Part shown: piece by piece, positions 1 to 30,100 of the stretch
How the letters are laid out: each line of letters opens with the position of its first letter
Numbering within the stretch: the first letter of the stretch is position 1
NCBI RefSeq assembly: GCF_000143415.4
Contig: NW_003314283.1
Location: 2,064,633 to 2,094,916 of the forward strand
Origin: Selaginella moellendorffii
Lineage: Eukaryota > Plantae > Lycopodiophyta
Direction: 5' to 3'
DNA: 30,284 nucleotides
Position numbers and translations under genes: made by a program
Notes under the pieces: model-generated
What the model was told of the DNA's origin: nothing
Seen by the model: only the letters and a program-made list of their open reading frames with translations
The model's database searches: none

Positions 1-46
1 CCTAAACCCTAAACCCTAAACCCTAAACCCTAAACCCTAAACCCTA
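1..46 (+). repeat. Plant telomeric repeat (CCCTAAA)n at the window start, probable chromosome end
   Basis: Perfect CCCTAAA array from base 1, C-rich strand running 5'->3' inward as expected for a left chromosome end. Confidence 0.9.
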
Positions 47-100
47 GACTCCGGGTATGTATGAGTGGCCTCAGGCCCCCCACCATCCCAGTCCACACAC

Positions 101-449
101 GGTCAACGCGGGGTCAACGGTCAACGACCGAATATTCCGACAATATTCCCTGCAAAGTGAACCACGTTTTTCGTCGCCGGGTACGCACAAGTGACACAAG
201 CATTGTGGACGTAACGCATGCATCATATCATGCCACGTTTACAAGTTATCTTGCGTCAAAGGTACGTCACCCGCCGGACGAACGCTTACTGTCTTCGGCG
301 ATCCGCCGAAGTCATTCTCCGCGACTACCACTGCTGTGGAGTCACCAACCCCAGCTGTGCTACGCTCGCATCCTCGCGAGCCAACGCCGTCATGCACTTC
401 GCATGGCCGCCACTCGGACTCGCGCCACGTGACAGAGCCAGAATATAAG
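101..449 (+). promoter_or_regulatory. Putative internal Pol II promoter of the hammerhead element (repeated in each unit)
   Basis: Three GGTCAA W-box cores at 101-125, GAATATTC HSE-like motif, G-box GCCACGTG 424-431, TATAAG 444-449 about 40 nt upstream of the ribozyme. Confidence 0.45.
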
Positions 450-485
450 TAGAGTCGGCGCCGAGCTAGGGTTAGGGTAGACGTT

Positions 486-543
486 AGACGACTACACCCG
501 GCTGATGAGTCCCAAAAAGGACGAAACCGGTCTCGGGTTGTCT
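486..543 (+). ncRNA. Type I hammerhead ribozyme (minimal, palindromic stem III)
   Basis: CUGAUGA 502-508; stem II GUCC/GGAC with loop CAAAAA; GAAA 523-526; ACCGGU stem III; GUC cleavage triplet (cut after 532); stem I CCCGG/UCGGG plus AGACGA/UUGUCU. Confidence 0.92.
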
Positions 544-790
544 CTTGTCTTCTCCCTCGCTCGCGAATGAATGAAAATTCATTCTCTTGCCTCCTCTACT
601 TGCTCTCGATCACGCCGTTTCGACAACGGCACATGGAGAATGTGGATTGCGCAAAGTGGTGCCGCGATCTCGCCGGATTGCAACACCGCGGGGTGTCTTT
701 GACCCTAAACGCCTAAACGCGCCTAAACCCTAAACCCTAAACCCTAAACCCTAAACCCTAAACCCTAAACCCTAAACCCTAAACCCTAAA

Positions 791-1547
791 CAACCGCTGG
801 ACTCCGGGTATGTATGAGTGGCCTCAGGCCCCCCACCATCCCAGTCCACACACGGTCAACGCGGGGTCAACGGTCAACGACCGAATATTCCGAGAATATT
901 CCTTGCAAAGTGAACCACGTTTTTCGTCGCCGGGTACGCACAACTGACACAAGCATTGTGGACGTAACGCATGCATCATATCATGCCACGTTTACAAGTT
1001 ATCTTGCGTCAAAGGTACGTCACCCGCCGGACGAACGCTTACTGTCTTCGGCGATCCGCAACTAAAACCGGCGATCCGCAACTACCACTGCTGTGGAGTC
1101 ACCAACCCCAGCTGTGCTACGTTCGCATCCTCGCGAGCCAACGCCGTCATGCACTTCGCATGGCCGCCACTCGGACTCGCGCCACGTGACAGAGCCAGAA
1201 TATAAGTAGAGTCGGCGCCGAGCTAGGGTTAGGGTAGACGTTAGACGACTACACCCGGCTGATGAGTCCCAAAAAGGACGAAACCGGTCTCGGGTTGTCT
1301 CTTGTCTTCTCCCTCGCTCGCGAATGAATGAAAATTCATTCTCTTGCCTCCTCTACTTGCTCTCGATCACGCCGTTTCGACAACGGCACATGGAGAATGT
1401 GGATTGCGCAAAGTGGTGCCGCGATCTCGCCGGATTGCAACACCGCGGGGTGTCTTTGACCCTAAACGCCTAAACGCGCCTAAACCCTAAACCCTAAACC
1501 CTAAACCCTAAACCCTAAACCCTAAACCCTAAACCCTAAACCCTAAA
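791..1547 (+). mobile_element. Telomere-associated hammerhead element, unit 2 (757 bp)
   Basis: 757-bp period with its neighbours; telomeric tract at 1479-1547. Confidence 0.8.
1243..1300 (+). ncRNA. Type I hammerhead ribozyme, copy 2
   Basis: Identical to 486-543; predicted cut after 1289. Confidence 0.92.
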
Positions 1548-2420
1548 CAACCGCTGGACTCCGGGTATGTATGAGTGGCCTCAGGCCCCCCACCATCCCA
1601 GTCCACACACGGTCAACGCGGGGTCAACGGTCAACGACCGAATATTCCGAGAATATTCCTTGCAAAGTGAACCACGTTTTTCGTCGCCGGGTACGCACAA
1701 CTGACACAAGCATTGTGGACGTAACGCATGCATCATATCATGCCACGTTTACAAGTTATCTTGCGTCAAAGGTACGTCACCCGCCGGACGAACGCTTACT
1801 GTCTTCGGCGATCCGCAACTAAAACCGGCGATCCGCAACTACCACTGCTGTGGAGTCACCAACCCCAGCTGTGCTACGTTCGCATCCTCGCGAGCCAACG
1901 CCGTCATGCACTTCGCATGGCCGCCACTCGGACTCGCGCCACGTGACAGAGCCAGAATATAAGTAGAGTCGGCGCCGAGCTAGGGTTAGGGTAGACGTTA
2001 GACGACTACACCCGGCTGATGAGTCCCAAAAAGGACGAAACCGGTCTCGGGTTGTCTCTTGTCTTCTCCCTCGCTCGTGAATGAACGAAAATTCATTCTC
2101 TTGCCTCCTCTACTTGCTCTCGATCACGCCGTCTCGACAACGGCACACGGAGAATGTGGATTGCACAAAGTGGCGCCGCGATCTCGCCGGATTGCAGCAC
2201 CACGGGGTGCCTTTGACCCTAAACGCCTAAACGCGCCTAAATCCTAAAACCTAAACCCTAAACCCTAAACCCTAAACCCTAAACCCTAAACCCTAAACCC
2301 TAAACCCCTAAACCCCTAAACCCTAAACCCTAAACCCTAAACCCCTAAACCCTAAACCCTAAACCCTAAACCCTAAACCCTAAACCCTAAAACCCTAAAC
2401 CCTAAACCCTAAACCCTAAA
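1548..2420 (+). mobile_element. Telomere-associated hammerhead element, unit 3, with a long variant telomeric tract
   Basis: Same unit; tract 2236-2420 includes variants such as CCCCTAAA and CCTAAAA. Confidence 0.8.
2000..2057 (+). ncRNA. Type I hammerhead ribozyme, copy 3
   Basis: Identical to 486-543; predicted cut after 2046. Confidence 0.92.
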
Positions 2421-4540: not shown

Positions 4541-5334
4541 AGTTAAGCTGGCAAATTGGAAACAAAAAATTTGTGGCTTACAGTTAAATGTAAAAGCCAA
4601 TACTTATTCTAGGCATATGCTTAAGATCTAACAGCTGAGAACTAATTATAATTGCCTTAATACAAAAAATTGCTCTATATTATTATTCTTATCCAATATT
4701 GCTTTTTAAAATTTGATAACATTCTTTGATACTATCATGTTATGCTATAAAAGACATATGTTAAAATAAATTTAGAAGAAAACTAAATTTTTTTTATAGT
4801 AATTGCAATAGAAGTTGTTTATCTATGTTTTATAATTTTTATATTAAGATATTTAGCATAGCACTTTAAAAAACTTAGTGTGTTTTTATTTGGTTTCATT
4901 TGAGGTGATTGGTATACATCTTTGATAAGTTCATTACAAATTACGATAATAATGTGGTGTATCATCTTACTTATAAATAAATAAATCTTTAACGTATGCT
5001 ATAAGTTTCAAATGTCTTTAATTTTGTTAAACATTTTTTTTCTTTAATTATGTGTCATATTTGAGGTGTTTGTGTCACTTATCTCACTGTTGGGACTAAT
5101 GATCACTGCTGCTGTTACCTTGGGTACCTTTATCAAATTGGAAATGGTGTTGCAAATGAAGACCACCAAGAAAGGAAATGTTACAGAAGCTACCAAGGAC
5201 TAGTGATACCTCAGCTACTATTTTAGTTATGCAAAGTCATCATTAAAGAAATGGAAAGCAATGTTTACCATAAAAATTTAAGGATATGGATGCATGCATT
5301 ATGTCCACGATGCTTGTGTCAGTTGTACATACCC

Positions 5335-5420
5335 GTTTAGGTTTTAGGGTTTAGGGTTTAGGCGCATTTAGGCGTTTAGGGTTAAAGACACCCCGCAGTG
5401 CTGCAATTCAACAATATCGC
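5335..5420 (-). mobile_element. Inverted, decayed 3'-end fragment of the hammerhead element with telomeric repeats
   Basis: Reverse complement reads GCGATATTGTTGAATTGCAGCACTGCGGGGTGTCTTTAACCCTAAACGCCTAAATGCGCCTAAACCCTAAA, matching the unit 3' end. Confidence 0.88.
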
Positions 5421-9297: not shown

Positions 9298-10097
9298 GAG
9301 CTGGCTCTAGTTCCCCTGGGAGATCGACTGGCCGATGCTCCCAGTCCAAATGTGGGTGGCACTACCTACTTGGATACTCGGCGTAGCTCAATGGAACCTC
9401 GCTCTAAGCCCATGGCTAGAGCACCCAAAGGCGGAAGGCGGGGAGAATACCCATGAGGTCCGCGTAAAGCCACGGTGTTCCGAAATGTTGTCCCAAAGGC
9501 CCAGACTGTGGAANNNNNNNNNNNNNNNNNNNNNNNNNNNNNNNNNNNNNNNNNNNNNNNNNNNNNNNNNNNNNNNNNNNNNNNNNNNNNNNNNNNNNNN
9601 NNNNNNNNNNNNNGGACTTAGTGGTCGGGCATGTGAGCCTCGATCTAGTGGCAGTGTTGGCGAACACGGCCATGGGCAGAAAGGGACTTGGTGGGGACTA
9701 GGAAAGGGGTATTGGGGAAGGCTAATCCCCGTGTCTGTGGACATCCTGAGGATGCTAAAGAGTGGATCTGGAATGATCACTCATGGACGGATGGCCCTGT
9801 CCTGGAGAGACGGGACTGTGATGCAGGTGGTGTTAGACCATCGGTGTAACCAAGGTGAAGGGGCATGGCTTAGCGTAACAGGCTGATATGTCAATGGTAC
9901 CTTGGGGTGTCGGTCACGAGATCAGACACGTGAAGCACTTGGATCGAGTACAAAGGTTGAGTGGCAGGGATGCCATTCTCGGGGCTAGCAAGTTCAAGTC
10001 CGAAATGGGACTTAGGGAGGTTGTGAGTGAGACTCCTCCAAGTGGTCGGAGGTGTGGTTAAGTGACTAAAATAGAATGGAAAATTTAGTCGCTTGCA
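9298..10097 (-). mobile_element. Truncated LTR, family B (inverted paralog of 12401-13175); contains a 100-N gap at 9514-9613
   Basis: Minus strand starts TGCAAGCGACTAAATTTTCC, matching TGTAAGCGACTAAATTTTCC at 12401. Confidence 0.8.
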
Positions 10098-12400: not shown

Positions 12401-14154
12401 TGTAAGCGACTAAATTTTCCATTCTACTTTAGTCACTTAACCACACCTCCGACCTCTTGAAGGAGTCTCATTCACAACCTCCATAAGTCTAATTCAGGAC
12501 TTGGGACTTGCTAGCCCCGAGAATGGCATCCATGCCACTCAACATTTGCACTTGGTCCAAGTGCTCCACGTGTCCGATCCCATGACCGACACTCAAAGGT
12601 ACCACTGACATGGCAACTTGTTACGCTAAGGCCATGCCCCATCACCTTTGCCACACTGGTAGTCCAATACCACTTGCATCACAGTCTTGGCTCTCCAAGA
12701 CTAGGCAAACCATCCGTGAGTGGTCATCTCAAATCCACTCCTTAGCATCCTTAGGATGCCCACCGACAAGGGGAATAGCCTTCCCCAATATCCCTCTGTC
12801 AGTCCCCACTAAGTCCCTTTCTACCCTTGGCTGTGTTTGCCAACACTACCACTGGATCGAGGCCCACAAGCCCGACCACTAAGTCCCACGATCCTCTGGG
12901 ACTTCCTCACCACACGACTGCGTCCTTGGTCATTGCCCCAGAGGACTGCTCCTCTTCCTTTCCACAGTCTGGGCCTTTGGGACAACATTTCGGAACACCA
13001 TGGCCTTATGCGAGCCACCTGGGTACTCTCCCCGCCTTCCGCCCTTGGGTGCTCTAGCCATGGGCTTAGAGTGAGGTTCCGTTGAGCCACGCCTGGTATC
13101 CAAGTAGGTAGTGCCACCCACACTTGGACTGGGAGCATCGGCCAGTCGATCTCCCGGGGGAACTAGAGCCGGCTCTTGAACACTTCACCAAGCTACCCCG
13201 CTTGTCGGTCCATGTTCACTCTAGTCTTGGACTTCCCAGTGGTCAGCTCATCACCCAACACTGGGTCTGGCCTTCCTGGGCCAAACTGGCTCCACTGGGC
13301 TCCAACCCCACACTCTCCCTATACTTTTGGAACCCCCCCCCCCCGGGGGACGATCGCTTTGGGCTTTCACCCAACTGCCTGTATTAGTATTCGGACTCGG
13401 ACTCGGGCTCGAACTCGGACTCGGACTCGGTCTCGGTCCCAGTTTCAGACTCGGACTCGGTCTCGGTCTCGGCTTCGACCTTGGTCTCGGTCTCGGTCTC
13501 GGGTCCATCTCGGACTCCATCTCAGATCCATCTCGGACTCCATCTCGGGTCCATCTCGGGTCCATCTCGGACTCCATCTCGGACTCCATCTCGGGTCCAT
13601 CTCGGGTCCATCTCAGACTCCATCTCGGACTCCATCTCGGGTCCATCTCGGACTCCATCTCGGGTCCATCTCGGACTCCAAATCGGGTCCATCTCGGACT
13701 CCATCTCGAGTCCATCTCGAACTCCATCTCGGACTCCATCTCAGGTCCCAACTCGGACTCCGCTTCGGACTCCAACTCGGACTCCACCTCGGACTCCACT
13801 TCGGACTCCAACTCGGACTCCGCTTCGGACTCCAACTCGGACTCCACCTCGGACTCCATCTCGGGTCCTTCTCGGACTCCAGTTCGGACTCCAACTCGGG
13901 TCCATCTCGAGTCCATCTCGGACACTTTTACGTGTCATGTGTTGGTCCTTTTGGGTTCCTTTTTGGAGCCTCGCTTATTGCTCGCTTCGTGCTCATTCCT
14001 CGAGCACTTCGTTAGGAGTTCCACTCCCACTCTCGACCTTTCAAGTCGAAGCTTTTGGCCCAAACGTGTTACACTCGTTTGGCTTTCGCTTCGGCCACTA
14101 CCACGTGGCACCCTTCCGTCTCCACTTTGGGGCCTAGGGATTTTGTGTCTCACA
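12401..14154 (+). mobile_element. Solo LTR, family B (1754 bp), with 5-bp TSD CTAAC
   Basis: TG...CA ends; CTAAC at 12396-12400 and 14155-14159; removing it rejoins the zinc knuckle of the host element; strand assignment tentative. Confidence 0.88.
13390..13923. repeat. Hexamer/dodecamer satellite (TCGGAC, TCCATC, TCGGGT) inside the solo LTR
   Basis: Tandem array; explains the low-complexity ORFs in all six frames. Confidence 0.92.
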
Positions 14155-15759
14155 CTAACTCTCCACAATGGAAGCAATGACCCACACTACATGTTCCACT
14201 AAAAGCAGGTTTTGCAAATTGCTACTACTTGTACCCACCAAGAGGAGGAACAGAGGGCTTAGAACAAGAAGAAGCTACCACCACCTTTGTTAACCATTGC
14301 TTGTGAGCCTCTAGGGCAGAACCTTCTTTCCACCCTCTGTTTATTCCCCTTGTTTATCATCACCTTGTTTATTCCTAAAATTCTTATTCTTGTCTGAGGT
14401 ACCAGCATACGTCTGTTGATATTGTTCCATGAGCGAGTGACTAAAGGCAATTTATTGTGCTGCCTCCTTACACTCCAGGTATGTCTTTGGATTAAACTTC
14501 AAAGTCTCATTGCAAGAAAGTGAACTTAAACCCTCCAGGAAATAACATTGAGCATTTTTGTCACTTATATTGGCAATTTTAATGCACTTTTGAGCAAATG
14601 CATTAACGTAATGCATAAGGTCCCCTCACTGCTTTAACCACTACAGCTTGGCGCAAAGTCTTAGACCAAAATCATCTGACAAGTATTCCTTATGGATAGG
14701 AGACCTCATCTCGGTCCAACTTCTAGTTTGCCCTTTTTCAGCACACATCTGGTGCCACCAAGTTTTGGCATGATAAGTGAGAAAAGACTGCATGCGCACA
14801 ACTTTCGTATGATCATCTATGTTTGCCGCTATGAAATAATTTTCCATATCGTACACCTAGTCTTCTAAAACTTGATAGTCCCGCATGCCTCTGAAATTGA
14901 GTGGTTTTAGAAGCTTGACCTTTGAAACTTGTGCAACCGGGGGCAGTTGCAAAACTTCATGGTCCTCAAAACTTGAAGAGGAGTTTGGTTGCTTAGGTTT
15001 AGCTGGTTTAGCTACCTCAACTTCTTTTTTCCTCTTTTTGTTCTCCTTCTTCAATTTGTGAATTTCCCTTCGCAAATTCTCAATCTCAACTTCCTAAGCC
15101 GTACGCTGAAGTGCTGCAGCATCTGGCTCTTCCCCTTTTGACTCAGCTTTAGTCTCTTTCGCAACATCTCCAATAGGAGTTCTCCTCTCGATTCACCCAT
15201 CTAAATGTTTCAGCATCATCAGTATGGTTCCTTTTCACCATCCTGCGAGCTATATACATGCCTCTATCAGTAACTAAACATGCATACAACATTCTTACTG
15301 AATGGCGCAATCCAACTAATCCTTCACAAGTCACTTCAGATCTACTAAAGAAGTCTCTACATATGCAACTTGAGTTAGAAAATCCAACAAAAGTTGAATA
15401 GGAATCGCTGAGACAGTTCCTCTGATACCAAATGTAGTGCACTTGAATTTGGAGCTAAAATCCAAGCCTGTTACACTACGAAATGAGGGTCTGGTACAAT
15501 CCCACAAGCACCAGCTCCCTGTATCCAACACCTACATGCAAAATGGTGTCAGACGGTATCTAGCACAATTTTGGCATACTGGTGGCTTAACGCAAGGAAG
15601 AGGGTACCACTAACTAGAGCAGCATGGAGCTTGGGCTTAGACCCAAACCGAACACAGAATAAAGAACAACATAACCCAACGGAAGCCAAACTAATGTCTC
15701 AAGTGGTCGGACATGCATTCTAACCACTATCCCTACTATACATTTGGAACGCCCCATAT

Positions 15760-16037
15760 CCCCCCCCCCCCCCCCAAGCCTCCCCTAGTACCAATAATTA
15801 GTCTCTGGGACAAGCTTAAAACTTACTAAATATGGAATGTCTCTATATTACAAATTTTGGCATGGGATGAACACTATTGTGTTCAATACAATCTCTACAT
15901 TCTGTAAATGTGCCAAATAAGCAAATCTAGACACTTTCCACAAATAGTATTTAGGACCAAAATGAGACTAGCACAAAGGGCATGATAGTGAAGGTGTTTG
16001 GTAGACATGGTAAGCTATTATGCAGCGATATTAAAGG
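15760..16037 (-). mobile_element. 3' internal region and PPT of a second family A element
   Basis: C-run 15760-15775 (minus-strand PPT); homologous to the reverse complement of ~6620-6885. Confidence 0.7.
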
Positions 16038-16710
16038 TTTCTTATCCACAACATGAGACTCCTCAAGCCAATTCCACCATCAAAGACCCGCATCACGCAA
16101 AACTATTGGAATAACCACTAAAGCCTCTACATCTGAAGTTCCCCTAGTAGACAAGAACTTCTTCACATTGGCTAGCTAAACGAGACACTTGTCCACACCA
16201 CTATTATTGGAAAAGGTTGGAATCTTGAGTTGATCTACTAAAGAAGGCTTACTTGGAGCGCTACCATGTCCAGCCTCAACTGCCTCAACACGCCCACGTA
16301 TGGTATCCATCATGCTATGCATCTTGTCTTGCATCTCTTGCTGATTTAGATTAAGGGCTCATAGCTCATGAATCACATCTTGAATGGTCTAAATCTTTGC
16401 AGCTCTATCTGCACCATCGTTGACACCACCATTGACAATAGGATTCCAGCGTTCAACTTGGTCGGCCATCGCAACCAACTCCTCTGATACCAATGTTATG
16501 ATTCGGTGCATAAAGACAAAGATCTAGTCACCCTAGACTATGCTACACCACCTCTTGAGGTTCCTCACCACCCAACCACCCCCGAGCTACCTCAAAAGCT
16601 CCACTACGCTGCCATTCCACTGTGAGCCCTAAGGTAGGATATGTCCCTTACCCTAACATGCCTTAATATCTCCCTTTGACTGACCACGTGGTCAAAGCTG
16701 GCACGTAACA
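16038..16710 (-). mobile_element. 5' end of a family C element: 5' LTR 16494-16710, tRNA-Met PBS, decayed gag start
   Basis: TGTTA...TAACA; TGGTATCAGAG on the minus strand at 16482-16492; ATG at 16469 begins MADQVERWNP with downstream stops. Confidence 0.8.
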
Positions 16711-17396
16711 AGGACTTATTACCATAGAGAAGCTTGGAATTAGCAATCTTGAAAGCCTGTGGGCATAAGTATCAAGCATACCGAGCTTTATGAGCCTTGA
16801 AGTTGCAACCTCTATTTATGTCAGCTTCTTGCCAACCTGATGCACTCTGCATTCATCACCAGCCATCTCAATCAGGATGGCGTAGTGACTCCACAAAGAT
16901 GTGAGGACCAATTTCCAAGCCTGCTGGATTTCTAGGTTTCTTCCAGGTTTGCAATTCAACAACCTTAGATGTACATGTCTAAAAGATGATTTGAGCTTGG
17001 AAATTCTAAATCTGGAATTCAGCTATGGCTATAGTTAAGTTGCACTACAACCTATAGAAAGAATGGGTATAATGTAAATCGGTATGGTGTCCTTAAAAAA
17101 TGAAAAACCACTTACTTGTGATAGGCTCCCATAATTGACCAGCCTAAAACTCATTCCATATAGTTAAAATGGATCTAGGAATTAGTTAAGTCCCCATCTC
17201 CATCCATATCCATTCGCTATACAAAGTCCATACTAGAAGCAGTTTACAGTGGTGAGCAAGGGAATGGTTTACCTTTGACTCTTTTAAAGGTTGGTATAGG
17301 AAGAGCCTTCGGGAAGAAACTTGTGATTGACAAGCCTCTTATGTTTGTGGGGATGCATAGTTACTTTTTGGACAAAATGAAGATCACTTGAAGTAT

Positions 17397-17610
17397 TATT
17401 AGGTGCCAGCTTTAACCACATGGTCAATGTCAGTCAAAAGGAGGCTCTTGGGTATAAGGGACTTAACCTACCCTGAGGCTTATAGTGGAGCAATGGCACA
17501 GTGGAGCTTTTGAGGTAACTCAAGGGTGGTTGGGTGGTGAGGAACCTCAAGAGGTGGCATAGCATAGTCTAGGGAAATTATATCTCTGTCTTTTTGTGCC
17601 AGATCATCAA
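17397..17610 (+). mobile_element. Degenerate solo LTR, family C (mirrored at ~28503-28716)
   Basis: Reverse-complement homology to 8372-8604 and 16494-16710. Confidence 0.75.
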
Positions 17611-18186
17611 AATCTTCAATCTCTTCAATCCCTGAATATTGACCTAACCTCCTAGTGACTCATCCTTGAGGTAAAGAGGTTCAGGAGAACCTGTTATAAC
17701 ACTCATGTTCTTTTAGTTCTAGACTAGAAAAGAAAATCACTATACCTAAAATTTTTCAATAACTTGGCTGAATTTAGAGTGCACTTCCACAATTACATTA
17801 TTGTCATCTATATGGAAGATTAGGGAGGTCATGACTAGCTCACTCTTTTCACTCCAGATGTATTCTAGCTCTTGAAGCAATGCTGATTTGCCACACTTCT
17901 TTGGGCTGGCCATTAGCATAATACAGGAGGGTTCCCTCCCCTAGAAATGCCATCATTGTCAACGTTTTGACTTCTATTTAACACATAAGAAGAATAACTT
18001 TGCTAAATAGTATGGAAAAGAGGATAGTGATGGAGAAAATTGTTACGAAGAATTATGAGAAATGAAAAGTGTTGCTTTGCTGTTTCTCTCTATTTGTCCT
18101 CTTGCCTTTAGCATTTATAGATAGATTAAAGAAACACATAGTCTTCAGAATAAAGTTTATTTTCTTGTGGTTCCAACCATTCCATA

Positions 18187-18546
18187 TCAGGGTAGAAGAT
18201 AACCTGAAGAGACAATAAGCTGTGAATTTGAAACAAGAAGAAGAAATTGAAGTGCCTTACTTCCACACTGATACTGATGGGGAAGAGTTCGATGACATAT
18301 TTTAGCAATGGTTAGAATTGAACTCAAGCTGATATACTTCGTGACATCTGAAGTAATTCTTGGGCACACACACTCAAGAGTGATCTTCCTCATAAAGCTA
18401 CAACAGGCTGGAGAGGGATTTGTGCTTTTGCAATTGCTGAGAATTCCATTGATGTTGTTGTCACATGTTGTATCAGCTTCAGAGAAGTTAAAGAAGGAAG
18501 CACTTGCTACAAGCAGTAACACTACAAATGTTTTCATCACTGCCAT
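18187..18546 (-). CDS. Non-specific lipid-transfer/prolamin-superfamily protein, ~100 aa (exons 18546-18261 and 18203-18187)
   Basis: Signal peptide; 8-Cys pattern C-C-CC-CxC-C-C; 57-nt GT-AG intron gives the C-terminus CGSYLLP. Confidence 0.85.
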   Translation of the reverse strand: MAVMKTFVVLLLVASASFFNFSEADTTCDNNINGILSNCKSTNPSPACCSFMRKITLECVCPRITSDVTKYISLSSILTIAKICHRTLPHQYQCGSKALQFLLLVSNSQLIVSSGYLLP

Positions 18547-18932
18547 TCATCAATGCCTTAGATGCTGTATATGGTTCTTATATAGTGGAGATCTGTTTGA
18601 TGAACACTATGAATGAAAGTATCTGATCCCACAACCAACAAACAACAAGTTCTAATATTGACTGGCAAACAGACCGTGGTGTCAAACACGGCATGGTTGC
18701 CAGTCAGCACGGCAGCATAGTCAGCACGGCATGCTTGCCAGTCAAGATTAAAACTTGTAGTTGCATGACTTTGACCACAGACCATGACTCTCGTATGTGA
18801 CTTTTGTTGACTTTATTTGAAAAATATACTCTTTGAGCATGGCAGTTGATAAAACCACGTCTTTCTGGGGTGATGCCGCATTCAAGATTGAAATTCCGGT
18901 GATGTTCAAATTTCTAGTTTCACAAGAAGAAA

Positions 18933-20272
18933 ATGATTTCTCACTGGGGCATCGTACTTCTCTTCGCACTTGGCATGAATCTGTCGTCTGAGGTATGATC
19001 ACATGATTCTGAAATGAAACTCTTAAGGTTTTCTTTCTTTTGTATAAGATCATGGACATGGAAATTCTACTGGAGTTCAAGCAAGGCATGTTGCAAAGCA
19101 ATTCTACCTTTTCTAACTGGCATGAAGGAAGCAAGGATGGGATTTGCAGCTGGAGAGGCATTAGTTGCAATTCTAAACGCCAAGTAGTGTCCATACATCT
19201 ATCCTCTGTGGATCTTGATGAAGCCTTGGTGGGAACTCTCACGCCAAGGCTTGGGCAGCTTTCATATCTTTCAGAGCTCGATCTATCGTTTAACAAAATA
19301 ACGGGGCAAATTCCTACCACCCTCGGAAATTGCTCCTCACTCACAGAGCTCAACTTGAGAGGGAACCAATTGACTGGCCATATTCCAGCAACATTAGGGC
19401 AGCTCCAGAATCTCACTGAGCTCTGGCTATCTGATAATTTCTTGAGCGGGTCTATTCCATCGAGTGTTGGGAACTGCTCCAAGCTGCGGTTCCTCAGTCT
19501 GGAAAACAACACCTTAACGGGCTCTATATCTCCATCGCTGGGTAAGCTCAAGAAATTGGAAAGTTTATCACTTTTTACAAACAATTTGGAGGGGCTTATA
19601 CCAATCACTCTTGGAAACCTTTCGCACCTCACATTTCTAGACATGTCTGACAACCTTCTATATGGCCCATTACCTGGCTCTTTTGCTGGTCTTCGTAGGC
19701 TAAAGTGGTTGGGACTATCGCGAAACTATTTTCTCAATGGATCGATTCCTTCGGATGTTATGGTGGGCATGCCATCTCTAACGCACCTAGAGCTCCATTA
19801 CAACAACTTTACAGGAAACATTCCCATGTTTAATGCGTCTTCTCCTGTTGTACTACTTCGCTTGGACGTTAACAGCCTGACAGGAAGCATTCCGCATTCA
19901 ATCACAGAGATCAAGGCTCTCCAGCAATTGCACCTCAACAAAAACTATCTAGATGGAAGCATTCCAAAAGGCATTAGCCAGCTGGATCGTCTTGAGATAC
20001 TTGACTTGAGTGACAACTATCTCAGAAATGAAGTTCCTCCACTCGACAAATGCACCAATCTTGGCTATCTCGACCTCCACAGAAACTTGATACGGAGCAA
20101 AATGCCAACGTTTGGTGCATGCACTAACCTTGTTTACTTGGATCTCTCAACGAACGAGTTCCAGGGAGAGATTAGCTCAAGGCTAGGGAATTGCTCCCAG
20201 CTCAAGGTTGTCAACTTTGCGCAGAACAATTTCACGGGTGAGGTGCCTACACGCTTCACAGCATGCAGCTAG
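18933..20272 (+). pseudogene. Truncated duplicate of the LRR receptor-like protein gene (exon 1 18933-18992, 56-nt intron, exon 2 from 19049)
   Basis: Near-identical to 24836-27180 up to 20246, then an unrelated tail PTRFTACS*; lacks C-terminal LRRs and the TM segment. Confidence 0.85.
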
Positions 20273-21542
20273 GCTTGGGGGACATCCTAAACCCTAAACA
20301 GGTGATGGATGAAGCTCCCGCAGACGCACTCCCCTGAGTGATCACGTGCTGGAGATGCCTCCCGAACCCCGGTTCGTTCCTGGTCAGGGCTAAACTCGCG
20401 TTGCAAGCTCAGCCACATCTTCTACCGCGCTTTGCAAGAGACGGAAGCATATGATTGCATCCTTCTCTGCATGACCGATGACCTTCAGGGTCTGGCCAAT
20501 GGACTCTAGGTATGTCCCAGTCACCCCAGGTCGTCCCCCACCGGTCAACGCCCGGTCAACGCTCAGTATACTGTCCAAACAGGAATATTCCCGAATATTC
20601 CCTGACAGTCAGATTGTTGACCGAGTCAACGAGGCCTACACCATTCGATTCTGCACCCCTTTCCAAGTGTGACTACGTTGGTCTCATCTCCTTACGATGG
20701 ACACCACACCTTGGAAAGCTCGCGAATCTCATAATGGTGCCATGCGACGACGTCAATGCCACACGCACCGACACCTCGCAGGAAAAGGACCTTTCTGCAT
20801 GAGCGAAGGACCTTGGGTACGTACCAGTCACTCCAGGCCACCTCCCTTTCGAGTCAACGCACGGTCAACGCGGAGTCAACGGTCAGAATGGAATATTCCC
20901 GAATATTCCCTGACAGTGTTTTTGTTGACCGAGTCAAAACGGCATATACCGTTGGATTCCGCTCTTCCTTCCGATCGTGAATATGTGAGTTTCAACTCTG
21001 AACTCCACACACGATTCGTTGAAAAGCGTGTTTTCCATTAAAACGGTGCCGCTCCTTCGACATCGGCAACGCACGCCAACAGCTCGCGGGATGGCTCTCC
21101 CCTGCATCACGCTGGACTCCGGGTATGTATGAGTGACCTCAGGCCCTCCACCATCCCAGTCCACAAACGGTCAACGCGGGGTCAACGGTCACGACGGAAT
21201 ATTCCCTGCAAAGTGGACCACGTTTTTCATCGCCGGGTACGTACGAGTGACACAAGCATTGTGGACGTAACGCATGCATCATATCATGCCGCGTTTACAA
21301 GTTATCTTGCGTCAAAGGTACGTCACCCGCTGGACGAACGCTTACTGTCTTCGGCGATCTGCCGAAGTCATTCTCCGCGACTACCACTGCTGTGGAGTAA
21401 CCAACACCAGCTGTGCTACGTTCGCACCCTCGCGAGCCAACGCTGCCACGCCACTTCGCATGGCCGCCACACGGACTCGCGCCACGTGACAGAGCCAAAA
21501 TATAAGTAGAGTCGGCACCGAGCTAGGGTTAGGGTAGACACT

Positions 21543-21600
21543 AGACAACTACACCCGGCTGATGAGTCCCAAAAAGGACGAAACCGGTCTCGGATTGTCT
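21543..21600 (+). ncRNA. Type I hammerhead ribozyme, copy 4
   Basis: Core, stem II and stem III unchanged; distal stem I is AGACAA/UUGUCU (G-U changed to A-U); predicted cut after 21589. Confidence 0.9.
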
Positions 21601-21740
21601 CTTGTCCTCTCCCTCGCTCACGAATGAATGAAAATTCATTCCCTCGCCTCCTCTACTTGCTCTCGATCACGCCGTTTCGACAACGGCACACGGAGAATGT
21701 GGATTGCACAAAGTGGTGCCGCGATCTCGCCGGATTGCAG

Positions 21741-22604
21741 AGCGTGAAGCTGCATGTGTCGGAGGTTCTTGACGACTTGAGTCGTGGAAACACGACCAAG
21801 TCATGGGAACTTTGTTGACTGGTGGAGGACAGTTCGGGACGACATCCCGACATAGCGAAGTGTCCGCGGTGGATGGACGTGGAAGACACTATGGGCGCAT
21901 TTTTGGATCTAGTGACAGGGAAGTGCTGTCACAAAGGGGGCCAGTGGCGGATGGTCGAGTTGGTTTGCTCGCGGAGGGGATCCCACATGGTTCTTGCTTC
22001 AGGGCTAGTCCTTTGAGAAGGTTCGCGGAGGCTTGCAAGTCTTGTGATTGTCACGATGCCGGCAACGGGGGCTCGTATATCATTGAAGGGGGCCAGCGCA
22101 CTTGTCTAGTGTGGGAGGCAAGGTAGCACGCTCTAGTCTAGAGCTGGAGGAGGCTCACACCTTGCTTGTTCTACGCCTTGGAGTTTGTTCGCAATGGGCA
22201 CCGACTTAGTGCTGGAAGTACACTGGGGAGGTAGGCGCTCCAAGACACAGCATCACGTCTTGGGGCGTAACAGGTGGCTTCAGCTTGTGCAGTGGAATCA
22301 CCTTGGAGGCGAGTGACCCATGAGCGACGCCGGGTCATCGTGCTCGAGTTGGACTGCTTGGCTGCGACGACGTCGAGCTAGATCGACATGGTGTTCATCT
22401 GGCTTGACATCATTGTAACCGAGTGGAGGAGTGGCGAGGCGAAGCAGGTGGCTTCAAGCTCCGTGGTGGAGTCACCTGGGAGGTGGACGGCCCAAGAGCA
22501 GCGCCGGGCGTTCGCGCTCATAGTTTCACTAGTTTCTTCGAGAGTGCGCTCTCAATGTTGTTTTGATCCCTTTGGGATTGGGGTAATGTACATATATGTT
22601 TAGT
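21741..22604. mobile_element. 864-bp unclassified insertion with an 18-bp target-site duplication
   Basis: GATCTCGCCGGATTGCAG at 21723-21740 and 22605-22622; this sequence is single-copy in the other units. Confidence 0.8.
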
Positions 22605-23439
22605 GATCTCGCCGGATTGCAGCACCGCGGGGTGTCTTTGACCCTAAACGCCAAAACGCGCCTAAACCCTAAACCCTAAACCTAAACCTAAACCCTAAAC
22701 CCTAAACCCTAGCCCTAAACCCTAACCCTAAACCCTAAACCCATGAAAAATTTCAATATGCACAATAAATATTTTTCAGAAATTGTTCAATAAGGAACTT
22801 CTTAACTTTAGAAGTTTATAACTACAGCAAGCTATATAAAATTAAATATAAAATGCTAGCTTTCAAAGATGTCATCTTGATCATACATTTTAAATTTAGA
22901 AAAATGTTTTAAATTAAAAGAATGACGTTAATTATTTTTCACTTTAAGGAAAATGGGAATATATCTATGATACCCATATATATTCTATAATAATCCTCAA
23001 TTTTAATAAACTTTTCTCTAATTCATTTATAATGGGGTAGGGGATATGGGCAATTCCAAATATAATGGGGATAATGGGTAGGTTGAGGTATGAACTACTT
23101 GAGATATTATTTATCTCCCCATTAGGTGTGCTATCTTTTGTTTTGAATCTTGCTTATATCTAAGCCTAAACTCTACCATGTTAGTTGGCGTATTTTGCTA
23201 TAAATATGCTAAAATCATTTAGCTTTGTTTTGCATGTTGATTTTAGAGTTGGAATTCTAAATGCTCTAAAACCATTATGATATTGCTCCATGTTCATGTT
23301 CCTTCATTTTTTTGTTGTATGCTTAAGAGTTTAACTTCATCCTTTTGTTCACTGTACCATAGCTCTAAAACTTAGATTCTGTTCTGGTGCCCTTGTTCAA
23401 GGGTTAAATTCCATTTTATAATTATTCACTATAGGGAAG

Positions 23440-24231
23440 TTATGGTAGCTCTTCATCCTGTTCATTCCATATACTAATATTGTATAGAGTTTTTCTCTCA
23501 ATAACAGCATAGGATATTGCACTTCCTACCATCAACAAAGAGAGGTACCAACTGAAAAGCAATGTTCCCATAGCTTTGGACTGGTTGACAAGGTTTTCAC
23601 TGCCACACTCGATCTTTTGGTGGTGACGAACAAACACTTGGCAACCCAGAGGCAGGAACGTTGCTGGGAACACAAGAAGTAATGAGAGCTGAAGCAGCCA
23701 AATGCCATGGAAGATGATACAAATTGACTTCCAAAACTTGATCATCATGGCATTGTGATTCTGTGGCACAAACACTTCCACGAGGCTTGAGAACATACAG
23801 GCAGTCACAATGAGCTGTAGAAGCATATGATAATGTCCTTCCACGCCGACATGATCCGTGGAATGCCAATGAAAGAGGAAGAGTTCTTGGGCGAACGCTG
23901 CTGCTTCCATGAGACTTACAAAAGCACTTGGCAAGTGTAGCTTGGAACGTAAACAGAGTGCATAGATCATGAACGGAATAGCCATGGAGATGTGCTCCAG
24001 GTCAGGATAGCTTCGTGATGGCTGAAGAATGCAGTGGAAAGTGATGACTCCTGCACTCCCAAGGAAGAGAATGTAAAACTCAGCTGGCTTTGTAATGAGG
24101 GAGAGTCGCCCAGGTTTTTCATGGCCTCGAAAACGAGATGCTGCATTCGTGAGAAAAAGCAAGAGTCCCCAAAAGATGAACGCAATTGCTGGAATACCAT
24201 GACCAAGGAACACAAGAAATCTGTTTGCCAT
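23440..24231 (-). CDS. DUF716/TMEM45-like multi-pass membrane protein (263 aa)
   Basis: GHGIP N-terminus, LEHISM, AFAQELFLFHWHSTDHVGVEGHYHMLLQ, several hydrophobic helices. Confidence 0.88.
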   Translation of the reverse strand: MANRFLVFLGHGIPAIAFIFWGLLLFLTNAASRFRGHEKPGRLSLITKPAEFYILFLGSAGVITFHCILQPSRSYPDLEHISMAIPFMIYALCLRSKLHLPSAFVSLMEAAAFAQELFLFHWHSTDHVGVEGHYHMLLQLIVTACMFSSLVEVFVPQNHNAMMIKFWKSICIIFHGIWLLQLSLLLVFPATFLPLGCQVFVRHHQKIECGSENLVNQSKAMGTLLFSWYLSLLMVGSAISYAVIERKTLYNISIWNEQDEELP

Positions 24232-24725
24232 TGTATCACATGTTTCCTTGACAAGCTTGAAATTTAAGGTGATGTATCACCGGGTCAAGGACGGTATTCT
24301 TATACTCATGTTAAAGCCGGTCATTGGTTGGTTGGCTATTCATTGATTGACCAGTATTTGAAGAGCTTAGACTTTGATCAAAGTAAAATATCGAAAGTTC
24401 TGTATCCACCTTGACCAACATTTCTGAGTGACTAACTTCTGTCATCTTTATTTGTCATGTATTCTTCCATTGACCACCACTATATGCTGGAATACCATGA
24501 CCAAGGAACACTAGAAATCTGTTTGCCATTGTGTCACATGTGCTTGAAATTTAAAGTGATGTATGACCGGGTCAAGGACGGTATTCTGACACTCATGTAG
24601 TCGGTCATTGGTTGGTTTGATCCGAAGAGCCTAGACATTTCAAATTAAAGTATGGAAAGTTCTGTATCCACTGTTCATTTGCCTATTTCTGGGTTTGCTA
24701 TTGTATTGTCATGTTCTTCCATTGC
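24187..24725. repeat. Diverged ~298-bp tandem duplication of the DUF716 gene 5' end and upstream region
   Basis: TGCTGGAATACCATGACCAAGGAACAC at 24187 and 24485, with continuing similarity. Confidence 0.85.
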
Positions 24726-24835
24726 CTAAACTTTGATCAGAGTAAAGCATCTGAATCCACCACGACCTAGACTCATGGAGGTCAATTGCTCATCAGCTTT
24801 TTCATTTGAGTTCTGGATTAACAAGTTAGCATTTC

Positions 24836-27180
24836 TTAAGAACTGCCAAGACGAGGAAGAAATGAAGGTATGCTGAGGCCAATAGATGCGTCCTCATGTT
24901 CCTTTGCCCGAAGCTTATACCTCCAACTTTGAAGGCTGTCCCAGAACGTGATGCCTAAAAATGTGACCCAAAAGCCAATAAACACACCGCAGCCAAATGC
25001 CCACACTGAAGCCTCACGGAAGAGGAAGTCCTTCTCCCAACTTTTGTGACTTGCAGGGTGCTCTTGATCCTTTGTTGCATAGCCACAAGGAGACAATGGA
25101 AACCCACAAAGGTTCTTATTGCCTTGGAATGCAAGTGGAAACCGAGTGTTTAAATTGTATGCAGTTGGGACCAATCCGCTTAAGTTGTTGAATGAAACAT
25201 TAAAGGCTGACAAAGGCAACTCCCCAAACTCGTTTGGGATCCTGCCTTGGAGCATGTTCCAGGATAAGTCAAGCGACTGAAGCTTTTTCAAGCTGGAAAG
25301 GTTGAGAGGTATGGCACCGGTGAACTGGTTGTGCGAGAGGTTAAGATGCATTAGTCCAACCAGTTGCCCAATTTCTTCTGGGATGACACCCTCGAGAGAG
25401 TTGCTTGAGATGTCCAATGAAGTCATGTTGTTTGCAACAACGATCGTTGTCCGATCAAACTGTATCCTTGCGTCGTTGACTATGATGACCAGGCTCAACT
25501 CTACCCCTGTGTAAATGCCAAGATTCAAATCCCCACTCGTGTTGCCCTTGAAACCTTGAAACTTCCAAAGCGCGCGTGGCAGCTGCCCTGTGAGTTTATT
25601 GTTTGACAGATCTAGAATTTGGAGCCAAATGAGATTGGTGGTGCAATCTGGAATCTGGCCAAACAGCTTGTTGTATGCAAAAGACAATATCATAATTCCT
25701 GACCAGCTGCAAGTTTCTTGAGGGATCTCGCCTGTGAAATGGTTCCTACTATAGTCCATGACTCTGAGATAAGTGGAATTCAAGCTTTTTGCTGGAATTG
25801 TGCCGCTCAACGTGTTGTTGGAAATGACAAAGAAGACCAAGCTTGTCAAGTTACTCAAGTCAAGCAGCACCTCACCCGTGAAATTGTTCTGCGCAAAGTT
25901 GACAACCTTGAGCTGGGAGCAATTCCCTAGCCTTGAGCTAATCTCTCCCTGGAACTCGTTCGTTGAGAGATCCAAGTAAACAAGGTTAGTGCATGCACCA
26001 AACGTTGGCATTTTGCTCCGTATCAAGTTTCCGTGGAGGTCGAGATAGCCAAGATTGGTGCATTTGTCGAGTGGAGGAACTTCATTTCTGAGATAGTTGT
26101 CACTCAAGTCAAGTATCTCAAGACGATCCAGCTGGCTAATGCCTTTTGGAATGCTTCCATCTAGATAGTTTTTGTTGAGGTGCAATTGCTGGAGAGCCTT
26201 GATCTCTGTGATTGAATGCGGAATGCTTCCTGTCAGGCTGTTAACGTCCAAGCGAAGTAGTACAACAGGAGAAGACGCATTAAACATGGGAATGTTTCCT
26301 GTAAAGTTGTTGTAATGGAGCTCTAGGTGCGTTAGAGATGGCATGGCCACCATAACATCCGAAGGAATCGATCCATTGAGAAAATAGTTTCGCGATAGTC
26401 CCAACCACTTTAGCCTACGAAGACCAGCAAAAGAGCCAGGTAATGGGCCATATAGAAGGTTGTCAGACATGTCTAGAAATGTGAGGTGCGAAAGGTTTCC
26501 AAGAGTGATTGGTATAAGCCCCTCCAAATTGTTTGTAAAAAGTGATAAACTTTCCAATTTCTTGAGCTTACCCAGCGATGGAGATATAGAGCCCGTTAAG
26601 GTGTTGTTTTCCAGACTGAGGAACCGCAGCTTGGAGCAGTTCCCAACACTCGATGGAATAGACCCGCTCAAGAAATTATCAGATAGCCAGAGCTCAGTGA
26701 GATTCTGGAGCTGCCCTAATGTTGCTGGAATATGGCCAGTCAATTGGTTCCCTCTCAAGTTGAGCTCTGTGAGTGAGGAGCAATTTCCGAGGGTGGTAGG
26801 AATTTGCCCCGTTATTTTGTTAAACGATAGATCGAGCTCTGAAAGATATGAAAGCTGCCCAAGCCTTGGCGTGAGAGTTCCCACCAAGGCTTCATCAAGA
26901 TCCACAGAGGATAGATGTATGGACACTACTTGGCGTTTAGAATTGCAACTAATGCCTCTCCAGCTGCAAATCCCATCCTTGCTTCCTTCATGCCAGTTAG
27001 AAAAGGTAGAATTGCTTTGCAACATGCCTTGCTTGAACTCCAGTAGAATTTCCATGTCCATGATCTTATACAAAAGAAAGAAAACCTTAAGAGTTTCATT
27101 TCAGAATCATGTGATCATACCTCAGACGACAGATTCATGCCAAGTGCGAAGAGAAGTACGATGCCCCAGTGAGAAATCAT
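24836..27180 (-). CDS. LRR receptor-like protein (RLP, no kinase), ~762 aa; exon 1 27180-27121, exon 2 27064-24836
   Basis: Signal-peptide exon MISHWGIVLLFALGMNLSSE spliced in phase 0 (GTATGA...ATAAG); LRRNT with CSWRGISC; many LxxLxLxxNxLxGxIP repeats; island domain; GNKNLCG; TM helix; short tail. Confidence 0.92.
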
Positions 27181-30100
27181 TTTCTTCTTGTGAAACTAGA
27201 AATTTGAACATCACCGGAATTTCAATCTTGAATGCGGCATCACCCCAGAAAGACGTGGTTTTATCAACTGCCATGCTCAAAGAGTATATTTTTCAAATAA
27301 AGTCAACAAAAGTCACATACGAGAGTCATGGTCTGTGGTCAAAGTCATGCAACTACAAGTTTTAATCTTGACTGGCAAGCATGCCGTGCTGACTATGCTG
27401 CCGTGCTGACTGGCAACCATGCCGTGTTTGACACCACGGTCTGTTTGCCAGTCAATATTAGAACTTGTTGTTTGTTGGTTGTGGGATCAGATACTTTCAT
27501 TCATAGTGTTCATCAAACAGATCTCCACTATATAAGAACCATATACAGCATCTAAGGCATTGATGAATGGCAGTGATGAAAACATTTGTAGTGTTACTGC
27601 TTGTAGCAAGTGCTTCCTTCTTTAACTTCTCTGAAGCTGATACAACATGTGACAACAACATCAATGGAATTCTCAGCAATTGCAAAAGCACAAATCCCTC
27701 TCCAGCCTGTTGTAGCTTTATGAGGAAGATCACTCTTGAGTGTGTGTGCCCAAGAATTACTTCAGATGTCACGAAGTATATCAGCTTGAGTTCAATTCTA
27801 ACCATTGCTAAAATATGTCATCGAACTCTTCCCCATCAGTATCAGTGTGGAAGTAAGGCACTTCAATTTCTTCTTCTTGTTTCAAATTCACAGCTTATTG
27901 TCTCTTCAGGTTATCTTCTACCCTGATATGGAATGGTTGGAACCACAAGAAAATAAACTTTATTCTGAAGACTATGTGTTTCTTTAATCTATCTATAAAT
28001 GCTAAAGGCAAGAGGACAAATAGAGAGAAACAGCAAAGCAACACTTTTCATTTCTCATAATTCTTCGTAACAATTTTCTCCATCACTATCCTCTTTTCCA
28101 TACTATTTAGCAAAGTTATTCTTCTTATGTGTTAAATAGAAGTCAAAACGTTGACAATGATGGCATTTCTAGGGGAGGGAACCCTCCTGTATTATGCTAA
28201 TGGCCAGCCCAAAGAAGTGTGGCAAATCAGCATTGCTTCAAGAGCTAGAATACATCTGGAGTGAAAAGAGTGAGCTAGTCATGACCTCCCTAATCTTCCA
28301 TATAGATGACAATAATGTAATTGTGGAAGTGCACTCTAAATTCAGCCAAGTTATTGAAAAATTTTAGGTATAGTGATTTTCTTTTCTAGTCTAGAACTAA
28401 AAGAACATGAGTGTTATAACAGGTTCTCCTGAACCTCTTTACCTCAAGGATGAATCACTAGGAGGTTAGGTCAATATTCAGGGATTGAAGAGATTGAAGA
28501 TTTTGATGATCTGGCACAAAAAGACAGAGATATAATTTCCCTAGACTATGCTATGCCACCTCTTGAGGTTCCTCACCACCCAACCACCCTTGAGTTACCT
28601 CAAAAGCTCCACTGTGCCATTGCTCCACTATAAGCCTCAGGGTAGGTTAAGTCCCTTATACCCAAGAGCCTCCTTTTGACTGACATTGACCATGTGGTTA
28701 AAGCTGGCACCTAATAATACTTCAAGTGATCTTCATTTTGTCCAAAAAGTAACTATGCATCCCCACAAACATAAGAGGCTTGTCAATCACAAGTTTCTTC
28801 CCGAAGGCTCTTCCTATACCAACCTTTAAAAGAGTCAAAGGTAAACCATTCCCTTGCTCACCACTGTAAACTGCTTCTAGTATGGACTTTGTATAGCGAA
28901 TGGATATGGATGGAGATGGGGACTTAACTAATTCCTAGATCCATTTTAACTATATGGAATGAGTTTTAGGCTGGTCAATTATGGGAGCCTATCACAAGTA
29001 AGTGGTTTTTCATTTTTTAAGGACACCATACCGATTTACATTATACGCATTNNNNNNNNNNNNNNNNNNNNNNNNNNNNNNNNNNNNNNNNNNNNNNNNN
29101 NNNNNNNNNNNNNNNNNNNNNNNNNNNNNNNNNNNNNNNNNNNNNNNNNNNNNNNNNNNNNNNNNNNNNNNNNNNNNNNNNNNNNNNNNNNNNNNNNNNN
29201 NNNNNNNNNNNNNNNNNNNNNNNNNNNNNNNNNNNNNNNNNNNNNNNNNNNNNNNNNNNNNNNNNNNNNNNNNNNNNNNNNNNNNNNNNNNNNNNNNNNN
29301 NNNNNNNNNNNNNNNNNNNNNNNNNNNNNNNNNNNNNNNNNNNNNNNNNNNNNNNNNNNNNNNNNNNNNNNNNNNNNNNNNNNNNNNNNNNNNNNNNNNN
29401 NNNNNNNNNNNNNNNNNNNNNNNNNNNNNNNNNNNNNNNNNNNNNNNNNNNNNNNNNNNNNNNNNNNNNNNNNNNNNNNNNNNNNNNNNNNNNNNNNNNN
29501 NNNNNNNNNNNNNNNNNNNNNNNNNNNNNNNNNNNNNNNNNNNNNNNNNNNNNNNNNNNNNNNNNNNNNNNNNNNNNNNNNNNNNNNNNNNNNNNNNNNN
29601 NNNNNNNNNNNNNNNNNNNNNNNNNNNNNNNNNNNNNNNNNNNNNNNNNNNNNNNNNNNNNNNNNNNNNNNNNNNNNNNNNNNNNNNNNNNNNNNNNNNN
29701 NNNNNNNNNNNNNNNNNNNNNNNNNNNNNNNNNNNNNNNNNNNNNNNNNNNNNNNNNNNNNNNNNNNNNNNNNNNNNNNNNNNNNNNNNNNNNNNNNNNN
29801 NNNNNNNNNNNNNNNNNNNNNNNNNNNNNNNNNNNNNNNNNNNNNNNNNNNNNNNNNNNNNNNNNNNNNNNNNNNNNNNNNNNNNNNNNNNNNNNNNNNN
29901 NNNNNNNNNNNNNNNNNNNNNNNNNNNNNNNNNNNNNNNNNNNNNNNNNNNNNNNNNNNNNNACTAGGGGAACTTTAGATGTAGAGGCTTTAGTGGTTAT
30001 TCCAATAGTTTTGCGTGATGCGGATCTTTGATGGTGGAATTGGCTTGAGGATTCTCATGTTGTGGATAAGAAACCTTTAATATCGCTGCATAATAGCTTA

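Follow-up and report, generated by a model that had tools for sequence, protein, structure and literature searches.

Non-coding units with hammerhead ribozymes and telomere-like tails chained in the genome of Selaginella moellendorffii

We describe a chain of three short non-coding units, each with a hammerhead ribozyme and a telomere-like tail, that occupies positions 1–2420 of a 30,284-nt stretch of the Selaginella moellendorffii genome (hereafter, the window). The window corresponds to GL377587.1:2,064,633–2,094,916 on the same strand and comprises the final 30,284 nt of this 2,094,916-nt scaffold. Besides the chain, it holds a diverged relative of the units on the minus strand, a longer copy at 20.3 kb (Table 1), a DUF716 gene (23440–24231, minus strand; recorded in GCA_000143415.2 on GL377587.1), and an inverted duplication of a leucine-rich repeat (LRR) gene region around the long copy. 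The chain units are probably RNA modules of the endonuclease-less Penelope-like element system of this species.

Anatomy of the chain and its relatives

By alignment, the chain resolves into three non-coding units of ~660 nt (U1, U2, and U3), all with the same layout of ~450 nt upstream of the ribozyme, the hammerhead, 169 nt from the predicted cut to the tail, and the tail itself. An earlier reading of this DNA (hereafter, the original prediction) had described three non-coding hammerhead units, each followed by ~170 nt and then a degenerate-to-perfect CCCTAAA tract, and this anatomy is present: there are four matches to the Rfam family RF00163, the interval between cut and tail is 169 nt in all four plus-strand copies, and the tails align. 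The three units are spaced by 753/757 bp and are 97–98.5% identical to one another and 94–95% identical to the long copy. The predicted later start of U1 relative to U2 and U3 also holds, although the offset in the alignment is 7–8 nt rather than 9. None of the open reading frames (ORFs) in the units, in the long copy, or in its insert contains a Pfam domain.

The four hammerheads are of type I and lie on the plus strand (496–538, 1253–1295, 2010–2052, and 21553–21595), with RF00163 (Hammerhead_1) scores of 40.5 bits for each chain unit and 42.5 bits for the long copy, the model being matched from 1 to 45. All four exceed the gathering score of 34 bits, in keeping with the minimal type I hammerheads of the original prediction. 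At permissive thresholds, the 68-nt segment at 484–551 also aligns to the full length of RF02275 (Hammerhead_HH9), with a score of 42 bits that falls below the cut-off of 52. In this alignment, we observe distal helix I, a CUAC bulge, and proximal helix I, and loop 2 is identical to the consensus. Membership in HH9 does not follow, as the loop of helix III is absent and the helix consists of ACC|GGU. Without this loop, closure within one molecule is impossible, and the palindrome ACCGGU would instead be predicted to form a 6-bp helix III between two ribozyme copies, an arrangement that has been discussed for newt and Penelope-type minimal hammerheads (PMC4209133). Helix III aside, the motif agrees with the canonical Selaginella form, which has been compared with the Schistosoma and human ribozymes (PMC4209133). 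The catalytic fold was not recovered by thermodynamic folding or cofolding, which are therefore uninformative on the dimer.

The three chain ribozymes are identical, and that of the long copy differs by one change in helix I. Every copy contains the uncut ribozyme together with upstream sequence, and the RNAs that were copied were thus uncleaved at this site. A ribozyme active only as a dimer would leave single transcripts intact. Exact scans of metagenomes with the hammerhead and the conserved tail gave no match. Plant long terminal repeat (LTR) retrozymes, which combine type III hammerheads in their LTRs with a primer-binding site and a polypurine tract, were considered and rejected, as the units lack LTR structure and their ribozyme belongs to type I, with an open helix I.

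Directly upstream of every hammerhead lie a TATA-like box and a telo-box-like G-strand motif, for which a promoter role may be proposed from their sequence. The long copy extends farther upstream and consists, in order, of a unique 5′ stretch of 200 nt, three modules of ~307 bp, the hammerhead, the 3′ region, an insertion, and the tail. Its modules start at 20501, 20808, and 21114 and are mutually 69–75% alike. The 1.25 kb 5′ of its ribozyme is non-coding and motif-rich, with the three modules being promoter-like. Modules 1 and 2 each contain a perfect four-unit heat-shock element, GAAnnTTCnnGAAnnTTC (20583–20600 and 20891–20908; two occurrences versus zero expected), while in the short units, a 3-nt spacer separates the same motif pair (130–148, 887–905, and 1644–1662). 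Triple GGTCAACG motifs adjoin the heat-shock elements.

The chain units begin at the start of module 3. The original prediction had made them ~800 bp shorter than the long copy, and their 5′ ends do lie ~810 nt downstream of its own; 864 bp of the extra length, though, belong to an insertion rather than to the element. This non-coding insertion (21741–22604) ends without a poly(A) and is flanked by an exact 18-bp target duplication, GATCTCGCCGGATTGCAG (21723–21740 and 22605–22622), within the last hairpin of the element; the duplication delimits the 18-nt site GATCTCGCCGGATTGCA(A/G).

A further difference among the copies lies in the upstream part, where U1 (304–322) and the long copy share a perfect 8-bp hairpin, CTTCGGCG..CGCCGAAG. 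In U2 (1061–1083) and U3 (1818–1840), the second half of this hairpin is replaced by a direct duplication of GGCGATCCGCAACTA, which resembles a template-switch scar.

The tails begin with degenerate repeats that are alike in all copies and then pass into perfect CCCTAAA. Because the degenerate repeats are the same in every copy, they are element-encoded and not a product of telomerase. This degenerate CCCTAAA-like tail is conserved in five copies, including the diverged one on the minus strand. An 18-nt tail motif occurs five times in the window, compared to 0.03 expected, and each occurrence runs into CCCTAAA on its own strand, such that the fixed polarity relative to the telomere tract that had been claimed is obeyed by five of five tails. 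In addition to the tracts of the chain, Tandem Repeats Finder reports CCCTAAA at 22661–22742 and a reversed tract at 5335–5383. The window has four different 5′ junctions, belonging to U1, to U2/U3, to the long copy, and to the minus-strand copy, and in each case telomere repeats on the expected strand precede the junction.

The sequence that directly follows the last tract of the chain, T3 (AGGTGATATGGATGCAT, 2421–2437), has the 13 nt GATATGGATGCAT (2425–2437) in common with positions 5284–5296, beyond a Ty3/gypsy-like fragment of 2.85 kb. Another 12 nt recur at the start of the long copy (20301–20312), the common part being AGGTGAT..GGATG. Target duplication, a shared 5′ end, and chance may each account for this, and in local alignment, the junction at 2421 does not score above shuffles against either the 5′ end of the long copy or the reverse unit.

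Table 1. Features of the chain, the minus-strand relative, and the long copy (positions in the window)
Feature	Position	Strand	Remarks
Telomere tract T0, CCCTAAA type	1–46	+	Tandem Repeats Finder; window begins within T0
Unit 1 (U1), non-coding retro-copy	46/47–701	+	First templated base 46 or 47 = 21117/21118 of the long copy
TATA-like ATATAAG	443–449	+	Read from sequence; 16–50 nt 5′ of the hammerhead together with the telo-box-like motif
G-strand telomere-like (telo-box-like) CTAGGGTTAGGGTAG	466–480	+	Read from sequence
Unit 1 hammerhead with extended helix I	484–551	+	Core 496–538; predicted cut C532/U533
Structured 3′ region, 169 nt	533–701	+	Fold, z −2.06; terminal hairpin contains the 18-nt site GATCTCGCCGGATTGCA(A/G)
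Element-encoded degenerate tail, then telomere tract T1	702–791	+	Tandem Repeats Finder; identical to 1459–1548
Unit 2 (U2)	795–1458	+	Preceded by AAC filler (792–794); 5′ end = 21110 of the long copy
Telomere tract after unit 2	1459–1548	+	Tandem Repeats Finder; 90 nt
Unit 3 (U3)	1552–2215	+	5′ two thirds identical to unit 2; 9 private substitutions in the 3′ region
Telomere tract T3	2216–2420	+	Tandem Repeats Finder (2216–2421); 28 repeats, with CCCCTAAA and CCTAAAA variants; proximal chain end, adjoins Ty3/gypsy-like fragment
Minus-strand junction	5283–5420	−	Tail of diverged relative 5384–5420, ~3.5 telomere repeats 5336–5383, unit from unit position 178 (5335 down to 5283)
Long copy	20287–22742	+	Telomere repeat of 14 nt, element from 20301, 82-nt telomere tract at the end

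Duplication within the chain, assembly position, and a healed break

Although the chain holds three units, it records only two independent additions. Positions 366–1320 are identical to positions 1123–2077 over 955 nt (zero mismatches between i and i+757 for i = 366–1320), which gives a perfect 757-bp period of 2.26 copies spanning 366–2077. The duplicated block runs from the end of U1 or U2 through the complete 90-nt telomere tract and the AAC filler into the next unit, of which it includes the 5′ end and two thirds. Private changes are confined to the flanks: those of U1 fall only before 366, and the nine of U3 only after 2077. As the truncation point, filler, and telomere length are all the same, U2 and U3 are not independent additions; together they represent one addition plus a 757-bp tandem duplication, and the three independent additions of the original prediction are reduced accordingly. 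The simplest history is a two-unit array that then underwent one unequal exchange or slippage in the segment shared between 366 and 563. The chain is thereby evidence that such arrays grow by unequal exchange as well as by retro-addition.

The assembly does not support the proposed location of the chain at a chromosome end. Within the window, the chain is at the inward-facing edge, 27.9 kb away from the end of GL377587.1, and its polarity is inward. No telomere repeat is found at the scaffold end, at which a fetched locus whose reverse complement equals window positions 13440–30284 exactly also stops. Runs of N interrupt the window at 9514–9613 and 29052–29962. We propose that the end marked by the chain became internal later, or that the scaffold join is wrong.

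The long copy, by comparison, sits on a healed break that can be placed to the base. The protein encoded by the DUF716 gene is 99% identical to a protein encoded 120 kb upstream on the same scaffold, and the corresponding locus (GL377587.1:1,942,657–1,963,448; hereafter, the sister locus) matches window positions 22742–27169 at 98.85% identity over 4.4 kb, colinear rightwards. This homology starts at CATGAAAAA, the first bases past the telomere tract of the long copy (22742/22743), and leftward of it, the sister locus continues as AT-rich DNA. Telomere repeats, a hammerhead, and the inverted duplication are all absent from the sister locus. Since homology is lost exactly at the telomere tract, the sequence indicates a break at 22742/22743 in the window locus that was capped by telomere repeats, with the element attached distal to them. 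The two loci could be either haplotypes or a segmental duplication. To us, the value of this comparison is that it gives a base-exact case of a break healed and then capped by a Penelope-like element, set against its unbroken sister locus.

On its distal side, the long copy is joined through a 40-nt filler (20247–20286), for which no source was found, to the LRR gene region in inverted form. The two arms of this duplication, one on either side of the long copy, span 15827–20246 and 25867–30284 and are 100% complementary over 3185 nt; one arm holds the 911-N gap, and the scaffold terminates inside one arm. This shape is what would be expected after the fold-back of an uncapped end.

Origin of the units and alternative explanations

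Endonuclease-less Penelope-like elements are on record for S. moellendorffii (PMC4209133, PMC8557442, PMC12477314, PMC13159263), and in the published model, the C-rich 3′ repeats of the RNA pair with an exposed G-rich overhang, the reverse transcriptase (RT) of the element copies it, and telomerase re-extends the end (PMC13159263, PMC8557442, PMC6431247). All of the features that we observe fit this model, and we consider it reasonably probable that the chain consists of non-coding, hammerhead-bearing, telomere-tailed RNA modules of the Coprina-clade Penelope-like element system of S. moellendorffii. The overhang-priming and telomerase mechanism of the original prediction is this same model, which means that the hybrid ribozyme/telomerase system it put forward is not a novelty. 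TERT was considered as the copying enzyme and rejected, as nothing pointed to it and the published RT partner is simpler.

For the chain, priming from the overhang, the RT involved, a role for telomerase, and transcription are inferred, and the sequence of events that we propose is as follows. A broken or uncapped end at 2421 would first have received the telomere repeats of T3, after which the C-rich 3′ tail of a unit RNA would have paired with the G-rich overhang, and the overhang would have primed reverse transcription by an RT supplied in trans. The new end would then have been re-extended with telomere repeats, and a second unit added likewise. Unequal exchange or slippage between the two units may have duplicated one 757-bp period to yield three, and the end would later have been internalized, or else was misjoined in the scaffold.

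When compared to the features that define Coprina/Athena-type elements, the copies have a hammerhead near the 3′ end, a telomere-like tail, and a head-to-tail arrangement of 5′-truncated, capped copies, while no Penelope-type RT without a GIY-YIG endonuclease is encoded by their ORFs as searched with Pfam; the copies here are at best non-autonomous or truncated.

Several observations weigh against assigning the chain to this system. ORF look-ups and homology searches yielded no RT-encoding copy, and the link to a Penelope-like RT is drawn from the literature. The CCCTAAA repeats are on the plus strand, and the implied terminus therefore lies leftward, into 2.06 Mb of scaffold and away from the nearest scaffold end. 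The perfect repeats could have been mis-counted in a draft Sanger assembly, and the independent 5′ ends that back a discrete RNA are only two. In rotifer Terminons, the telomeric stretch follows the ribozyme directly (PMC6431247), versus 169 nt downstream here. Finally, 9–26% of the words sampled from the units were found in sequencing runs guessed to be RNA, which is weak evidence on transcription.

Exact look-ups of six ORFs found no other genomic copies, and homology searches with a unit ORF and an integrase fragment likewise found none. One run from a second coded organism (B), also guessed to be RNA, contained 21% of the exact 31-mers of U1, and part of the unit may be common to another species or sample.

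Within the Penelope-like assignment, our preference is for a ~660-nt unit that exists as a discrete RNA and acts as a non-autonomous partner, over one that arose by random truncation of the RT-bearing element. The two independent 5′ ends (U1 and U2) are separated by 7–8 nt at the third 5′ module boundary, for which we estimate a chance of ~1–2% under random truncation over 1.3 kb. Together with the 1.25 kb of non-coding sequence upstream of the long-copy ribozyme, this favors a discrete RNA, and judging from the clustering, the RNA may have a defined 5′ terminus, for example at a transcription start. The competing explanation is that there is no separate family and that the units are heavily 5′-truncated tails (the pseudo-LTR part) of an autonomous, RT-encoding Penelope-like element whose own RT acts in cis. 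This is the most credible of the alternatives, and we regard it as possible but doubtful. Published elements of the species do carry type I hammerheads in their terminal repeats (PMC4209133), and 5′-truncated head-to-tail arrays capped by telomere repeats are the norm (PMC6431247). Against such truncation stand the clustered 5′ ends, a long copy that shows three promoter-like modules and no coding signal over the 1.25 kb 5′ of its ribozyme, and the fact that 0/5 copies in 30 kb reach an RT.

A bolder version of the discrete-RNA reading, to which we give little credence, is that the ~660-nt unit is self-promoted, a short interspersed element (SINE) of a Penelope-like element in a plant. Its heat-shock-element-, TATA-, and telo-box-like motifs would drive transcription, the dimer-only hammerhead would spare single transcripts for copying, primed from the telomere, by a Coprina RT, and read-through arrays would be cut to 757-nt RNAs with an internal telomere tract.

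It is also conceivable, though in our view unlikely, that the copies were captured at internal double-strand breaks, with element cDNA being primed from a few telomerase-added repeats and then ligated to another broken end, such that these sites were never stable chromosome ends. The telomere tracts are indeed short (14, ~25–48, 82, 90, and 206 nt), none of the three junction groups lies at a scaffold end, the copies are separated by host genes, and a 40-nt filler joins the long copy to the inverted gene fragment. Two successive additions, on the other hand, each with new telomere repeats, require an end that was open for some time, the inverted duplication beside the long copy has the form that an uncapped end would give on folding back, and published elements are largely confined to termini.

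Far less plausible is a retrozyme-like cycle, in which a possibly circular RNA of 757 nt, reaching from hammerhead to hammerhead (533 to 1289), would replicate and the perfect tandem would have arisen via rolling-circle reverse transcription. The perfect period covers all three ribozymes, the loop-less helix III makes cleavage dependent on two ribozyme copies, as in tandem transcripts, and tandem type I hammerhead repeats define the animal non-LTR retrozymes, which are proposed to be Penelope-like derivatives (bioRxiv 10.64898/2026.07.22.740005). Nevertheless, the duplicated block is in register within a pre-existing two-unit array, whose U1 is distinct in its 5′ part and U3 in its 3′ part, and one unequal exchange accounts for this with no new mechanism required. 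The block of identity at 366–2077 is not bounded by cleavage sites, all copies hold the uncut ribozyme with upstream sequence, and only ~2.3 periods are present.

Least credible of all is an assembly artefact or plain subtelomeric satellite, with perfect repeats and an internal position stemming from a 2011 Sanger draft in which haplotypes stand side by side: the two N gaps, the perfect identities over 955 nt and 3185 nt, and the 98.85%-identical copy of the neighboring locus 120 kb away on the same scaffold, which could be a haplotig, are in its favor, but the unit junctions are mutually different and each of unique sequence, U1 and U3 carry private substitutions, and an artefact would not create ribozymes and tails of constant polarity.

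Relation to known systems and remaining features

The closest likeness is to the Penelope-like elements published from the same species. In both, the terminal repeat carries a type I hammerhead whose helix I is extended and whose helix II and loop 2 resemble those of the Schistosoma and human ribozymes; both also end 3′ in reverse-complement telomere repeats and form head-to-tail, 5′-truncated copies between telomere repeats. As judged by description only, the locus differs in having five copies without an RT ORF, a loop-less helix III, clustered 5′ ends, and an internal chain. Tandem hammerhead copies in S. moellendorffii have been mentioned (PMC5680766), and the species, element class, ribozyme, and mechanism are all already published. 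We found no description in the literature consulted of a short non-coding telomere-tailed unit in a plant.

The Athena elements and Terminons of bdelloid rotifers (Arkhipova et al. 2017, summarized in PMC6431247 and PMC8557442) are alike in that C-rich 3′ repeats next to a hammerhead attach to G-rich overhangs and in their long head-to-tail chains, 5′ truncation at telomere repeats, host genes trapped between units, and later internalization. Terminons are giant and coding, with the telomeric stretch right after the ribozyme, whereas the chain units are ~660 nt and non-coding, with a tail 169 nt downstream; the repeat type and the host kingdom also differ.

Animal non-LTR retrozymes are likewise non-coding tandem units, and their type I hammerheads also depend on a partner copy (Cervera and De la Pena 2020, PMC7229834; bioRxiv 10.64898/2026.07.22.740005); they are proposed to derive, as non-autonomous forms, from Penelope-like pseudo-LTRs, and such hammerhead derivatives have been proposed for animals (bioRxiv 10.64898/2026.07.22.740005). 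The chain does consist of tandem non-coding type I hammerhead repeats, yet its period includes a telomere tract, and the array is the product of two additions and one duplication. Retrozymes have neither a telomere-complementary tail nor joining telomere tracts, and their circular RNAs are documented, whereas the chain is known from DNA sequence.

The HeT-A/TART/TAHRE elements of Drosophila also form head-to-tail, variably 5′-truncated terminal arrays and include a partner that depends on an RT in trans (PMC5537684). They differ in being non-LTR elements of the LINE (long interspersed element) type with poly(A) tails, in a telomerase-less host, and in having neither a ribozyme nor a telomere-complementary tail (PMC5537684).

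Among mobile elements, the endonuclease-less Penelope-like ones are the closest relatives of telomerase, and plant cases are very few. The locus leaves the known mechanism unchanged, and its value is mainly documentary; it also hints at a short non-coding RNA, equipped with regulatory modules of its own, that may be carried along by the system.

Apart from the hammerhead units and the inverted duplication, the window contains a 12-nt minisatellite, TCTCGGACTCCA, with ~37 copies at 13391–13923, which several long ORFs on both strands overlap.

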